Origin: Rhodosorus marinus CCMP1338
Lineage: Eukaryota; Plantae; Rhodophyta
DNA length: 64,000 bases
Assembly (NCBI GenBank): GCA_029953675.1
Contig: JAMWBK010000009.1
Span: 372,001 to 436,000 of the forward strand
Reading direction: 5' to 3'
The position numbers were made by a program, and so were the translations under genes. Under the pieces are notes generated by a model. The model was given only the letters and a program-made list of their open reading frames with translations, was not told the DNA's origin and did no database searches. Positions 20,101-35,357 of this stretch are shown piece after piece; position 1 is the first letter of the stretch; every line of letters begins with the position of its first letter.

Positions 20101-21337
20101 TTTCCAATAAATGGAGTTTAGATGTTGAATTGGGGTATTGAGATACTAAAAGTAATATAATTGGTGACTTGGTTTTTATAGGACAGGTGTATATTTTCCA
20201 TTACAGGACACTGATTTTTTGGATGATTTGGATGCGTTTGATTGGTGGTGACAGTCTTTCCTTCAGAATCATTTGGATTTCTCTTTACAAAGTCGGTTTC
20301 TTTTGGAGTAGGGAGGAAACGGGACTGAGTATGATGACAACGGCTTTTTCGCAATCGAATCAGTTCGGAGGAATATTAGTTGATGATGGAGTCGATCGAG
20401 CGTGTTTTTGAAAGATAAAGTGAGTCACATCCGGCCGTTTCTGCCCTTCTGCATCCCGATCCAACAACCCGAGTTTCGGTTGACATTCGTTGAGATTCCC
20501 CAGGTGGTCATGGATGGTGATTGAAATCATGCCTGAGAATACCATTGATTTTCTTTTGGTTGAAATCAACGCTACTATCACCATTCGACTTCATCCGCCT
20601 CCAACTATGTCGACAAGGCATATGGCTTTTTATGTAGAATCATTGTGTATCCCCTGAATTTCTGCTGGAGAACAAGCCTTGTGGCCTGGTAGAGAAGCCA
20701 AACGTCTTCCCAAGCGTATGTGCTTGCAAGTATTCCTCCAAGGTGCTTTACCAACTGGTGAAGTAAATCCTGCCTACGTTTATCGAGTTCAGCACACCTT
20801 CACGTCTTCCATCCGCATACTTCAATGCCGGACTAGATTCCTATACTCCTATTTTCTATGGCTATTATGTTGGCAACCCAGCAGCCTATTCCTCAGGACG
20901 CGTTTCAACACGTCACCATGGTCGTAACATTTTCACGTAACCACGTGGTTCAAACAACGAAGATCTAATCATTAGAGCCTTACTTGGAAATGAATCCAAG
21001 AAACCAAACGACACAAGAGACGAGAAGCTAACAATAAGGGAGCGGAAGGCAGCGCTTCTTCCCAAACCCTAGGAACGGTTCGGATCCGCTTAACGTTGCC
21101 GAGAAACGTCGTTTCTAAACTCATATTGGCATCATTGAGCAGGGTTGAGAAGAAAAACCTACTCGTTGATCAACGACAATCGTTTATGGTGTGTGTGTGT
21201 GGAACCATCTTGAAAACAAGGACGCGGATGAGCTTTAATAGTTTACAAACGGAGGGAGCGCTCTGATTGGATTCCTCGGTACTTCACTGCTGCTTTGGTT
21301 AAGTTCAGGGGAGGCTGGCTGTTTTGGTGGCGTGGAT

Positions 21338-21820
21338 ATGATGAGTGCCCCGGCATGGGATTTACCGTACTACGCGTTTCTGTTAGCGTACAAGATCTTA
21401 CGACCTCCGAGGTTGAAGCTGGGCTTTAACGTTAAGTCTCCTGGTGCGAATGTGCTTTTGCCGGCTTCCTTCTTGGGTTACTTTATCATGCTTTCTGGCG
21501 TTGTTTATGACATCCTACTAAGGCCGCCGATGATTGGTTACACGCAGGATAAGCTCACGGGTAGTGTGCACCCCTTATTTGTACTCCCAGACAGGCTCAG
21601 TGGACAGTTTGCCCTCGAAGGGTTTGTCATGGGCTTCACGTTCTTAATGGGTGGAGCTGGATTGATCTACTTGATGTCCTCTGTCAAGCACAAAGCCAAA
21701 TACTCCAATTCGATATACTCCGTTATTGGGGCGATATCGGCGTCATTCTTCGCCCTAAAAATGTGCGAGAGCTTTCTTGAGCACAAATTAGGGAGCTACC
21801 TCAACGGATACCGCGCTTGA
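21338..21820 (+). CDS. OSTC: Oligosaccharyltransferase subunit OSTC/DC2
   Basis: Intronless 3-TM protein with LRPPRLK, YFIMLSGVVYDI...PPMIG and RLSGQFALEG. Confidence 0.9.
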   Translation: MMSAPAWDLPYYAFLLAYKILRPPRLKLGFNVKSPGANVLLPASFLGYFIMLSGVVYDILLRPPMIGYTQDKLTGSVHPLFVLPDRLSGQFALEGFVMGFTFLMGGAGLIYLMSSVKHKAKYSNSIYSVIGAISASFFALKMCESFLEHKLGSYLNGYRA

Positions 21821-28846: not shown

Positions 28847-31466
28847 CTAGACTACCGACGTGCAACTCACTGACGACCGCAACATGGTTTGGTCAGCGGA
28901 CTTTAACAAGTCGAGTTTTTGAGAAGTCCGCAGTAGCGCAGTACAGCATAGTATGCTGTTGAAAACCCACATAGAATGGGGTACGTTGTAAAATTCCGAT
29001 CTATAAAACTCTCGAGCGCAGGGAAAACGCGTTCTGATGTAATGCTCAACCGAGAAAGCGTTCATAGTTGCCGACGCTCTTTCCCTGCGAAAAAAAACGA
29101 TTGTTTAGGGGACCACCTTTCTGGTAGGGGAAGGTCGCGGAGTCGCGGTCAAAGCTCGGCTTTCGAGATTTGCGAAGCGAGCAGCCTACCTGTGCGCATA
29201 GGTTAATTACTAAAAGGCGGTTTGTATCGACAATCTTCACATCACGTCCATGCGACCTGTAGATCTCAAGGGCGGACCTGTAGTACTCCTCCGCTTCCAA
29301 TCTTCTCCCTGCTTTATCGCAGACGATCCCGAGCATTTTGAGCACATCTGAGAATGTTTCTTCCCTCCACTTCTCGCCTTCGGGTAGCAGATTCTTTGCG
29401 CTGGACTTCATATGCCATACGCTCATGGCCTGACGAAGATTGGATTCCGCCTCGTCGTACTGGTCCATCTTCACCAACATGTTAGCAATTTCCAAGAGGA
29501 ACTCGATTGTAAACGGGGTAACCCTACGCGCGCCAAATTATGAACAGTAATGGCAAAATCATTAGCCTTCAACAAGCATGTTCCTTCTCAACTGATGAAG
29601 GCGAGGGACCTAGATTACCAAGCTCCATATCTTCTTCGCGCAAACGTCGCCCGCCTGAGGAGCTCGACGGCCTGCTCCAAGCTATTCTCGCTTTTGAGTT
29701 TGATCGCCTCTTTGTACCAATCCTTCATAAGACTGTTGACAATTTCAATGTTTGAGTCGTGCCGACAGCGGATGATGTCCTCGTCAAACGCGCACGAAAG
29801 TAGTTTGTCCTCCTCCTGCGCCGGAATAGGCTGAGCAGCCTCGGCTAGATCCTTAGTGGCATTCTTCCTCGTCACCATGTTCTTTCCATCCTGACTCCAG
29901 TAGTTCTTTTCGTCATTGCTCTGTTCAAAACATGCAGGACATGAAGTAAGAAATATTACAGTTATCGAACAAGAGGAGAACGAAAACCTCACCATCTGCC
30001 ACTTCAAGTTTCTCAGTAGATTGTCTCTTGCCAGTCGCACATTGATACCCTCATGTCCTTCTCGTCGGTATACTCTTAGGGCCTTCTTATAGTACAATTC
30101 TGCGGTACTCTTCTCTCCAATCCTGTCCATCAGTACTCCGTAATGGAGCAGAATATCAGCAAGTCTGTACGACTTTCCCGCTTCGTATCCTTCTCTCTCA
30201 TATATCGAGATCTAACGCGGAAACCGAAAGAGGTGTTAGAAGCGCCTTAGTTTTTGACAGCTTCGGAGGTGGACTACGTACTGCTGTCCTCAGGTGAATT
30301 TCCGCCAAAGTATTCTGCTCCATCTTCATAAGCGTACGACCCAACTCCGAGTAAATCTCAGGATCCCCTGGACTGAGGTCCAAGGCCTTTCCGTAGGCTC
30401 CCACCGCATCGAAATAGTTGGCCTAGTGGGTAAAGACAGGGAGCAGCGCTCGGTTTCAATTAAGATGCTCATCTATGGACAAGCCAGCGAGGAAGAACCA
30501 GGAGTAACAGGTGTCCCAGACTAACGGGGATGTGTAAGCCGCCTTTCCAGCCCGTGGCTAGCCCCTGAGTGCTTGAAAAGCGCTTTGCGTTTCCGTCTTC
30601 GGATGAAAACTACTCACCTCTTTGAAGAATCTTCTACCGCGAATGATCAAGTCCATGATCTCGTGTTTCTTCTCCCGCACATGTGATCGAGATGCCAGCG
30701 CACGAAAGTTGATGTCGAGGCTGGTTGGTAGCATACTCGAGACCTTATCGAACCATCTGGATTTCTCGTTCGTCGAAGTAAACAACATATCTGGGTTCGA
30801 TACCTGGAGAATTTGGAACACGAGGTGCACGATCTGAGTCGTTCGGTGGGTAGACCGAAGCAGGGGCATTTCGTGGACCTACCATGACGTCGACGTAGTT
30901 TGACCTATGACCGTTGCCAGGATCGATCAACAAATACGCTGGATCTTTTCGTACTTTCCATTTACCGTTGACAAGAAATCGGTAGTAGTGCCTGAGCGGA
31001 ATCAAAGATATCAGTCACGATCGGATTGCTTCCATCGCTTGGTGAGGGCGGTATGGTTGTGTGTGAGCTGATGCTGTGCCCACCTCCCAGGCTCCACTTG
31101 AAACACGATGCCAAGCCGACCAGAAACAGTTGGAACCAGTGGATGCGTCATGTAGCCGTCAAACGAAGCTGAGACCTTGACGTGTTTTGTGTTCGATTTC
31201 CAGACGAACGATATCAGATTTTCGTCATCGATAACTCCTGTCCTAGCGCAGAAAGGTCCCAGATCGACAATGTTGTTAAGCTGAGGCAAGACATCTGCAA
31301 AAGCAGAGAGGTCCTGGCGAACATGTTTTAGCAAAGAATTTCCCCTAGCGACTCCTCTCTGTTGATTATAGTCGAAGTTCTCACTGCTCTGCAAAAACAA
31401 AGACTCCCGGAACTCCGGCTGAACTTCAATCTCCTGAAGCAATTTCTTTATTACTTCACCATCCAT
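28847..31466 (-). CDS. CBM48 (AMPK-beta-type glycogen/starch-binding module) fused to multiple TPR repeats
   Basis: CBM48: ISFVWKSNTKHVKVSASFDGY...EPGR|HYYRFLVNGKW...NYVDV. TPRs: AVGAYGKALDLSPGDPEIYSELGRTL, AELYYKKALRVYRR, ANMLVKMDQYDEAESNLRQAM and LEAEEYYRSALEIY. The 3' end is uncertain. Confidence 0.82.
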
Positions 31467-33854: not shown

Positions 33855-35357
33855 ATGAAACGTGAAGTTGTAATAATTGATGCAGACGATGAGGCAGAGA
33901 TTCGCAGGAGGAGAAGAAGCAGTCGGAAACGGCCGAGGGCTACAACAGAGATTGCGTAAGGTTTTAGTTCTTCACTCAACGATTTTTCCTCGTTTTTCTT
34001 GGTATCTCAATTTCTTACTGAGTCTGCTTACTTGGTTTCTCCTCTTCGCGGCTGAAATGCCTGTCGTTACAGGAGCCGACTGTTAAGTACAGAGAATAGT
34101 TCTGTGCAAGTAGAGACTGGATCATCTGTGTCGAACAAGTTAGCACGCCTGGAGGTGCAGAGGACAGCAGAGGTTCCCAGCATTGATGATCTGAGTGATG
34201 ATCTTCTTGTTCAGATCTTTCAGCATCTTGGAGGGCTTCTTGAGCTCATGCGAGTGTTGCCCGTGTGCAAGAGATGGCTTAGAGTTGGAGGAGACCCACG
34301 GTTATGGAGCACGCTGTCTTTCTACAATTATGAGCATGTCTCTGACGCAGCGCTGAGGTCTATTTTGGCGAATGGTCAAGCTTTGCGACGGCTGAAATCT
34401 CTTTCCCTAGCGAAGTGTCACCGCATTTCGGAGGAGACTGTGAGGCTGATTCCAAAAAGCCCCTGCGTAAATTCACTGGAGTCGATAGATCTGTCTTGGT
34501 GCTCCGGTGCTAGCTCTCGCTCGGTTCCCATATTCTCCCGATGCCCTGGGCTAAAGGAGGTCAAGTTGTCCTATTGCTGGTATGACGAGCGCGACATGTT
34601 TTTCCTCGGCTTCGGAAAATGTTTACAAAGCAAGCGTCTTTCTTGCCGTTTTGTGCAAACTTTAGGAAAGTTCACGGTCGAGCCCTGAAATGCCTCGCTC
34701 TACGGTGTCCACGGTTGGAGGTCCTTGACATTAACTGCTGTACCAATGTTAGAGACTCGCATATAATTGCGTTCGCTGAACACTGCAGGAATCTACGATA
34801 CCTCAACATTGCAAACGCTAGAAGTGTTAGCGACCGAGCGATTTGCCGCCTCGCGGAGCACTGCAAAAATCTGGAGGTCCTTGACCTCTCCTGGTGTTCG
34901 AAGATAACTGACGTGTCCTTAAACGCCATAGCCGCAAATTTGCCGAAACTGCGTGAGCTGAGGTACGACCGCGTGGAACGCACAGTACGGTTAGACCGAT
35001 TTTACGTATATGCTGACGAACTCACCCCTATGCTTTATGAATACTGATAGATTGAACGAAACGCAAGTAAGCAACCTTGGATTGTGCCAAGTGGTTAAGT
35101 CATGCAAGCAGCTGGAGGAGCTGCACTTAGCACGGTGTCCCATCGGCGTTTTCGCTGCTGCGAGCATTGCCCTCCACTGTCGAACGAACTTGAAGATCCT
35201 CAACCTTGCCTGTTGTGAGGCGATCCCGGATAGGGCGGTCGTGGCAATCCTCTCCTGCTGTATCTCTCTGAGAAGTCTCGACGTTTCCACCCTCCCATGT
35301 AGGAGGATAGGAAACATCGTTGAGAGCTTCTCTGGCCAGACTATTGTATATTATTGA
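33855..35357 (+). CDS. F-box / leucine-rich-repeat protein (FBXL family; AMN1-type Cys-containing LRRs)
   Basis: F-box IDDLSDDLLVQIFQHL...PVCKRW. Repeated LxxLxLxxCxxI(T/S)D units, e.g. LEVLDLSWCSKITDVSL. Basic NLS-like RRRRRSSRKRPR. Confidence 0.92.

Follow-up and report, generated by a model that had tools for sequence, protein, structure and literature searches.

In plants, amylose content and the number and shape of starch granules are controlled by the PTST family, MRC and MFP1. AMPK/SNF1/SnRK1 beta subunits act as scaffolds that link other proteins to glycogen. Red algae store their starch in the cytosol and the enzymes of this floridean starch have been catalogued; in the literature on red-algal and floridean starch, we found no report of a non-catalytic organising protein. 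In PTST, a CBM48 reaches the starch while a docking module brings GBSS, and its starch binding depends on both counterparts of W100 and W133 of rat AMPK beta-1, being abolished when these two Trp residues are mutated (PMC4339375). Here, we describe a gene of the red alga Rhodosorus marinus CCMP1338 that joins an AMPK-beta-type CBM48 to two blocks of tetratricopeptide repeats (TPRs). The gene was picked out in a first reading of the sequence alone (henceforth the sequence-only reading) of a 64,000-nucleotide (nt) window, corresponding to positions 372,001 to 436,000 of contig JAMWBK010000009.1 (assembly GCA_029953675.1), and all coordinates below refer to this window. The encoded protein is a concrete candidate for the missing organising layer of floridean starch.

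A bacterial-style listing of open reading frames (ORFs) splits the coding sequence in six minus-strand pieces. The gene model was built by joining these at GT-AG sites on the reverse strand, yielding 8 exons and a 1713-nt frame (570 codons plus stop) for a product of 570 residues; all 7 introns are of the GT-AG type and measure 69 to 195 nt (Table 1). The strand and the place given by the sequence-only reading are thereby confirmed, with its upper bound at 31466 coinciding with the start ATG. Its lower bound at 28847, on the other hand, lies some 200 nt past the stop codon (29048-29046), and positions 28847-29045 are non-coding.

Two full-length R. marinus transcriptome proteins, P0001 (568 residues, MMETSP0011) and P0002 (567 residues), are 92% and 90% identical to the model, respectively. 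Both are colinear with it over 100% of the length and at all seven exon junctions, have the same first and last residues, and carry an identical exon 8 C-terminus. Because of this colinearity at every junction, the CBM48 and TPR parts belong to a single gene and a single transcript, in line with the fusion noticed in the sequence-only reading; transcripts from two separate genes, which that reading had named as grounds for rejecting it, are thereby ruled out. A wrong merger of an adjacent CBM48 gene and TPR gene during annotation can be envisaged a priori, given that the CBM48 and TPR domains lie in different exons. However, the independent transcriptome-derived proteins cover both parts with identical junctions, by which such an artefact is refuted; moreover, the same fusion is present in Florideophyceae, and the sole open frame through the locus requires removal of all seven introns. 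We consequently leave this explanation next to no probability. No paralogue was found in the 64-kb window, where tblastn of the model matches its own locus only. Introns 5 (29993-29921, 72 nt) and 7 (29189-29085, 105 nt) are multiples of 3 without an in-frame stop, so that retention of either would keep the frame open and add 24 or 35 residues, respectively; the transcriptome proteins represent the spliced form.

Table 1. Coordinates of the R. marinus CBM48-TPR gene, its exons and the genomic spans of its domains (aa, amino acid residues of the model; AF2, AlphaFold2)
Feature	Position in window	Strand	Content
Whole CBM48-TPR coding region	29046..31466	-	ATG 31466-31464, TGA 29048-29046; 8 exons
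Exon 1	31084..31466	-	aa 1-127 plus 2 bases of codon 128; acidic N-terminal region, first half of CBM48 including Y105
Exon 2	30883..30991	-	second half of CBM48 (HYYRFLVNGKW...), with R132 and W139
Exon 3	30618..30803	-	final CBM48 residue, disordered linker aa 166-205, first helix of TPR1
Exon 4	30282..30422	-	helix B of TPR1, and TPR2
Exon 5	29993..30211	-	remainder of TPR2, TPR3, capping helix of block 1; TPR_12 at aa 249-322
Exon 6	29619..29920	-	disordered spacer aa ~346-403 and TPR4; conserved ARRRYGAW motif at end
Exon 7	29190..29523	-	TPR5, TPR6, capping helix; TPR_1/TPR_2 at aa 506-537
Exon 8	29046..29084	-	last 12 residues (GKSVGNYERFLG) and stop codon
CBM48 (aa 84-165)	30801..31217	-	split by introns 1 and 2
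TPR block 1 (aa ~206-345)	29996..30680	-	3 TPRs and capping helix (Pfam, AF2)
TPR block 2 (aa ~404-560)	29079..29749	-	3 TPRs and capping helix (Pfam, AF2)

A Pfam search of the 570-residue protein assigned residues 86-164 to AMPK1_CBM (PF16561; E=4.9e-10, 39.9 bits against a curated cut-off of 26.8). TPR_12 was matched with E=5.6e-16, also above its curated cut-off, along with TPR_1, TPR_2, TPR_8 and TPR_10 (residues ~220-322 and ~455-545). These matches are far beyond chance. In the same search no further family was matched, catalytic ones included, and neither was AMPKBI (PF04739), even at E<=1, while PF04739 was detected in P0091 and P0092, genuine AMPK beta subunits returned by the phmmer search described below. 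When a profile of the family introduced below was compared with solved structures, the rat AMPK beta-1 CBM (1Z0N) came first with E=7e-15, followed by yeast Sip2, LSF1 and SEX4. Both the AMPK-beta-type assignment of the CBM48 and the lack of a catalytic domain, as put forward from the sequence alone, were thus borne out.

Structure prediction with AF2 was run on a 9-sequence family alignment; three near-identical sequences alone gave predicted local distance difference test scores (pLDDT) below 30 for the CBM48. The resulting model contains a beta-sandwich of about 10 strands (residues 65-163, pLDDT 78-84), a disordered linker (residues 167-208, pLDDT <50), TPR1-3 with a capping helix (residues ~213-345), a disordered spacer (residues 350-402), and TPR4-6 with a capping helix (residues ~404-557). 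The beta-sandwich and both TPR modules are confidently predicted. The overall predicted template modelling score (pTM) is low (0.35), and because of this the modules probably have no fixed arrangement relative to one another, resembling beads on a string. The long TPR array described in the sequence-only reading accordingly does contain TPRs, but as six repeats in two blocks of three, with about 55 disordered spacer residues between the blocks.

In a Foldseek search with the whole AF2 model, all listed matches were TPR proteins and none a CBM48. LGN/Pins (with LGN as the best structural match), consensus TPRs and OGT came first, with KLC1 around rank 39 and Hop/Sti1 at ranks 38 and 40; identity in the LGN and KLC matches was 13-15%. 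By sequence, consensus TPRs were closest, whereas KLC2 was matched over TPR block 2 with E=0.004. The predicted TPR fold thus appears to match, in a generic way, peptide-binding scaffolds such as LGN, OGT, KLC and Hop. The earlier description of the repeats as kinesin-light-chain-like therefore holds as far as membership of the TPR_12 class goes, but not for a specific kinship with KLC1 or KLC2.

Residues 1-220 were used as a phmmer query against 1.84 billion representative proteins, giving 122 matches. Among these, a phmmer search with the TPR half identified six in which TPRs follow an N-terminal CBM48, an architecture confirmed by Pfam. For P0098, P0112, P0118, P0074 and P0052 the match to the TPR half covers two colinear blocks, whereas for P0008, which is shorter, it covers one. 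The named relatives are Gracilaria domingensis KAI0567308.1 and Agarophyton chilense CAN8065013.1, both Florideophyceae; the others are one UniRef/MMETSP protein, one found in MMETSP only, and two proteins from Logan read assemblies. P0054, a EukProt entry that is truncated, can be aligned with this family as well. In the alignment, members have in common a short conserved strand motif ahead of the CBM48 (RFSVR, replaced by FCART in Rhodosorus), then the CBM48 itself, a linker that varies, TPR block 1, a spacer, and TPR block 2, the latter beginning with a conserved R-x-R-x-G-x-W motif. The inter-block spacer is of low complexity and differs greatly in length between members. As judged by alignment and Pfam, the Rhodosorus protein fits this pattern colinearly, and two red-algal classes can be named in which the CBM48-TPR architecture is present, Stylonematophyceae (with Rhodosorus) and Florideophyceae. 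The family is conserved both within and between red-algal classes and has so far been seen in red algae only.

The top phmmer matches, carrying 3-8 CBM48 repeats, were rejected as orthologues (P0004, P0006, P0007, P0010-P0013, P0023, P0028 and P0031). Those checked are either GH13 amylase/pullulanase fusions or non-catalytic tandem-CBM proteins; their high rank stems from the summing of scores over the repeats, and the few of them with a source name are entries from bacterial metagenome-assembled genomes, one from Elusimicrobiota. The tandem-CBM48-only proteins, of ~330-700 residues and without a catalytic domain, are uncharacterised. A word-index search with the full protein, and likewise with residues 1-220, returned Rhodosorus sequences only. 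With the family alignment as input, TPR-only proteins dominated the list, which lacked even the input members themselves and carries no information on taxon range.

No published description of the family or its architecture was found in the literature on CBM48 combined with TPRs, red algae, floridean starch or PTST, and the literature on the Rhodosorus genome and on starch-granule proteomes yielded nothing on a CBM48-TPR protein. The impression of the sequence-only reading that this architecture had not been described is in line with this. The architecture is not unique to this genome, however, as uncharacterised entries exist for G. domingensis and A. chilense; the named database entries are labelled by a domain-derived name or as 'unnamed protein product'.

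The rat AMPK beta-1 CBM has been crystallised with cyclodextrin, and its residues were mapped on the Rhodosorus protein through a phmmer alignment to 1Z0M/1Z0N (construct start 68, with the numbering checked by S108). The stacking aromatic W100 corresponds to Y105 (in FDGY), the basic K126 to R132, and W133 to W139 (in NGKW), while G147 of the site is kept as G155. The sequence-only reading, which had recognised one stacking Trp in NGKW and a Tyr in place of the other in FDGY, is in agreement with this alignment. On this mapping, the three glucan-contact positions that are known best are occupied in the CBM48 by an aromatic residue, a basic residue and an invariant Trp. R132, W139 and G155 are invariant in all nine family members compared. 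The first stacking aromatic is Trp in most members, Tyr in Rhodosorus and Phe in one; most members thus retain both stacking Trp, and, since Trp occupies the position in most of them, Tyr105 appears to be a peculiarity of Rhodosorus. Both Trp are also conserved in other CBM48s that have been compared (PMC2955755).

Within Rhodosorus, TPR block 1 is 96-98% identical among the three sequences and TPR block 2 is 96% identical, while identity falls to 87-90% in the CBM48 and to 72-88% in the N-terminus, linker and spacer. This pattern fits constrained binding surfaces. A Logan assembly (L001, positions 1-1068; SRR32518361) contains the 5' end of the same gene from another Rhodosorus strain, and its exon 1 protein is identical to the MMETSP0011 protein. 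Comparison of exon 1 gave a synonymous divergence (dS) of 0.35 and a ratio of nonsynonymous to synonymous divergence (dN/dS) of 0.22, indicative of purifying selection. Nucleotide identity between the window and L001 is 89.0% in exon 1, 93.3% in exon 2, 81.3% in intron 1 and 84.4% in the 5' flank; differences thus affect 7-11% of the positions in exons and 19% of those in the intron. Given this divergence (dS 0.35), the window clearly represents a different strain or species from those whose transcriptomes were sequenced.

The interpretation that we consider somewhat better than an even bet is that the protein is a non-catalytic scaffold or adaptor, which binds alpha-glucan, works in a PTST-like manner and concentrates TPR partners at cytosolic starch. 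The N-terminal CBM48 would bind alpha-1,4/1,6-glucan, either at the surface of floridean starch granules or as soluble chains. Through their concave grooves, the two three-repeat TPR modules, carried on flexible spacers, would bind short peptide motifs in at least one partner, and the partner proteins would thereby be concentrated at the glucan. We infer glucan binding, cytosolic location and the existence and identity of partners solely from domain logic and conservation. As context in favour of this interpretation, other CBM48 matches among the 122 are attached to GH13 amylases and pullulanases. The TPR-based starch scaffold suggested by the sequence-only reading hence keeps its basis in a single transcript, the non-catalytic composition, the AMPK-beta-type CBM48, a non-transit-like N-terminus and conservation in red algae; its inclusion of motors does not, as the resemblance to KLC is generic and gives no reason to favour motors.

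Several observations weigh against this scaffold interpretation. The taxonomic range is the reach of the single phmmer search seeded with residues 1-220 of the Rhodosorus protein, and amounts to a shallow survey. In the sugar site, the residue differs from that of AMPK beta-1 at two out of five contact positions: L146 corresponds to N154, with Asn in Rhodosorus and Phe in most relatives, and N150 corresponds to S158, with Ser or Ala throughout the CBM48-TPR family. Red-algal cellulose synthases (CESA) also carry an AMPK-beta-type CBM48, for which glycan binding is doubtful, both stacking Trp having been lost (PMC2955755). Since CESA carries one as well, this phylum also employs the module outside starch metabolism, and a CBM48 alone does not prove a starch role in red algae.

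The altered contact positions and the loss of both Trp in CESA, together with the replacement of the first stacking Trp in Rhodosorus and in one relative, could be accounted for by a CBM48 that no longer binds carbohydrate but serves as a protein-interaction or structural module, in which case the protein would be a TPR scaffold of a general kind, with no link to starch. The CBM of AMPK also makes protein contacts. On the other hand, Tyr and Phe both remain aromatics capable of sugar stacking, no variation is seen at the second Trp, at the basic residue or at the Gly between classes that separated long ago, and most family members keep both Trp. We regard a CBM48 without carbohydrate binding as unlikely, although with an appreciable residual weight.

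A further point against the scaffold interpretation is found at the N-terminus. The first 40 residues of the Rhodosorus protein include 8 acidic and 4 basic residues and the N-terminus is predicted by AF2 to be helical; its acidic character argues against organelle import, in line with the sequence-only reading, which had noted no obvious transit peptide. In Gracilaria, Agarophyton and most of the source-unassigned relatives, however, the region preceding the CBM48 has a basic character, with many Ser, Thr and Ala but few acidic residues, a composition that resembles a plastid transit peptide. Agarophyton and several relatives (P0112, P0074, P0052, P0054 and P0098) share RHSIAPRV-type (R-H-S-I/L-A-P-R-V) and RFSVR motifs in the ~50 alignment columns before the CBM48, with R-x-S sites of a basophilic-kinase-like kind, where Rhodosorus has a longer, acidic and helical N-terminus.

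The N-terminal composition of the relatives is the sole pointer to a plastid-imported family that would act inside the organelle, for example in the assembly of a plastid complex via the TPRs, and not at cytosolic starch. Aside from the acidic and predicted helical Rhodosorus N-terminus, this is opposed by the conservation of the N-terminal motifs between classes, which is unusual for a transit peptide, and by the AF2 prediction of the RFSVR-equivalent segment as a beta-strand beside those of the CBM48. Moreover, we know of no alpha-glucan in red-algal plastids. Import into the plastid is accordingly judged very improbable.

Besides tethering, the protein might act as a sensor of glucan status. 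In such a case, the CBM48 would bind soluble malto-oligosaccharides or glycogen-like chains, and its occupancy would alter the action of the TPRs on a signalling client (a kinase, phosphatase or ubiquitin ligase), reporting carbon stores. The closeness of the CBM48 to the AMPK/SNF1 beta-subunit type is consistent with this, as is the finding that the TPRs are the most conserved part, and the flexible spacers would allow intramolecular regulation. In addition, the kinases of C. merolae that were examined are without a CBM48, and sugar sensing has been proposed to reside on individual red-algal proteins (PMC2955755). However, Pfam detects neither AMPKBI nor a kinase-related domain, AF2 predicts no contact between CBM48 and TPRs (pTM 0.35), and the sequence offers nothing that separates sensing from tethering. 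We consider a sensor function unlikely.

A more specific version of the scaffold interpretation would make the protein a red-alga-specific starch organiser, in which the CBM48 holds nascent or mature floridean starch and the TPRs dock proteins of the outer plastid envelope or granule-initiating enzymes, thus setting the sites of granules; in R. marinus, it might build the starch cap around the pyrenoid. This possibility is raised by the cytoplasmic starch cap that surrounds the protruding pyrenoid of R. marinus, a structure without any known molecular component in red algae (PMC13655443). In this specific form, we rate the proposal as decidedly speculative and quite unlikely.

Two other putative genes were recognised in the window. 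At 34104-35357 (+), three ORFs in shifting frames resemble one spliced F-box and leucine-rich-repeat (FBXL-type) gene (PF12937, E=2e-8; LRR_4 and LRR_6), which lies ~2.6 kb upstream of the CBM48-TPR gene as its neighbour and is transcribed divergently from it. At 21332-21820 (+), an ORF matches the C-terminal half of an OST3/OST6 oligosaccharyltransferase subunit (PF04756, E=5e-7) and probably forms a single exon of a gene with introns.

If the CBM48-TPR protein does bind starch, its TPR interactors would reveal which steps of the cytosolic starch system are spatially organised, and might also reveal how starch comes to adjoin the plastid. The protein is furthermore a second example, after CESA, of an AMPK-beta CBM48 redeployed in red algae.

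Among described systems, the likeness to PTST1/2/3 (rice FLO6) lies in the combination of a non-catalytic, AMPK-beta-type CBM48 protein with a protein-docking module. PTST is plastidial and carries an N-terminal coiled coil and a C-terminal CBM48 (PMC4339375), whereas in the Rhodosorus protein the CBM48 is N-terminal, two TPR blocks follow, and the N-terminus is not transit-like. Membership of the PTST family is rejected, as its domains stand in the opposite order, TPRs make up the docking module and no sequence relation was seen beyond the CBM48; the Rhodosorus protein would be a PTST analogue at most. Rat AMPK beta-1 and yeast Sip2, of the AMPK/SNF1/SnRK1 beta subunits, provide the closest solved CBM48 by sequence. 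In AMPK beta, however, a C-terminal AMPKBI binds the alpha and gamma subunits, and the Rhodosorus protein has TPRs in its place; without a match to AMPKBI, its identity as an AMPK beta subunit is rejected.

The red-algal CESA of Griffithsia monilis and Porphyra yezoensis resembles the Rhodosorus protein in having an N-terminal AMPK-beta-type CBM48 in a cytosol-facing protein (PMC2955755). In CESA, Val and Glu replace the stacking Trp residues and the module is fused to a membrane enzyme, in contrast to the Tyr/Trp pair and the absence of an enzyme part in Rhodosorus. Chlamydomonas SAGA1, SAGA2 and EPOS1 (LCI9) are likewise non-catalytic, combine an N-terminal starch-binding CBM with partner-binding motifs, and place or shape pyrenoid starch (PMC13655443), but their CBM is a CBM20, they are stromal, bind Rubisco motifs, lack TPRs and are unrelated in sequence. 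With TPR_12-class scaffolds such as LGN/Pins and kinesin light chain, the protein shares the TPR_12 pattern and the superhelical peptide-binding fold, while the KLC heptad region and the LGN GoLoco motif are missing. Identity as a kinesin light chain is rejected in view of the weak KLC2 match, the 2x3 rather than six contiguous TPRs and the CBM48 at the N-terminus, and the similarity to the TPRs of the Hop/Sti1 co-chaperone is one of generic fold.

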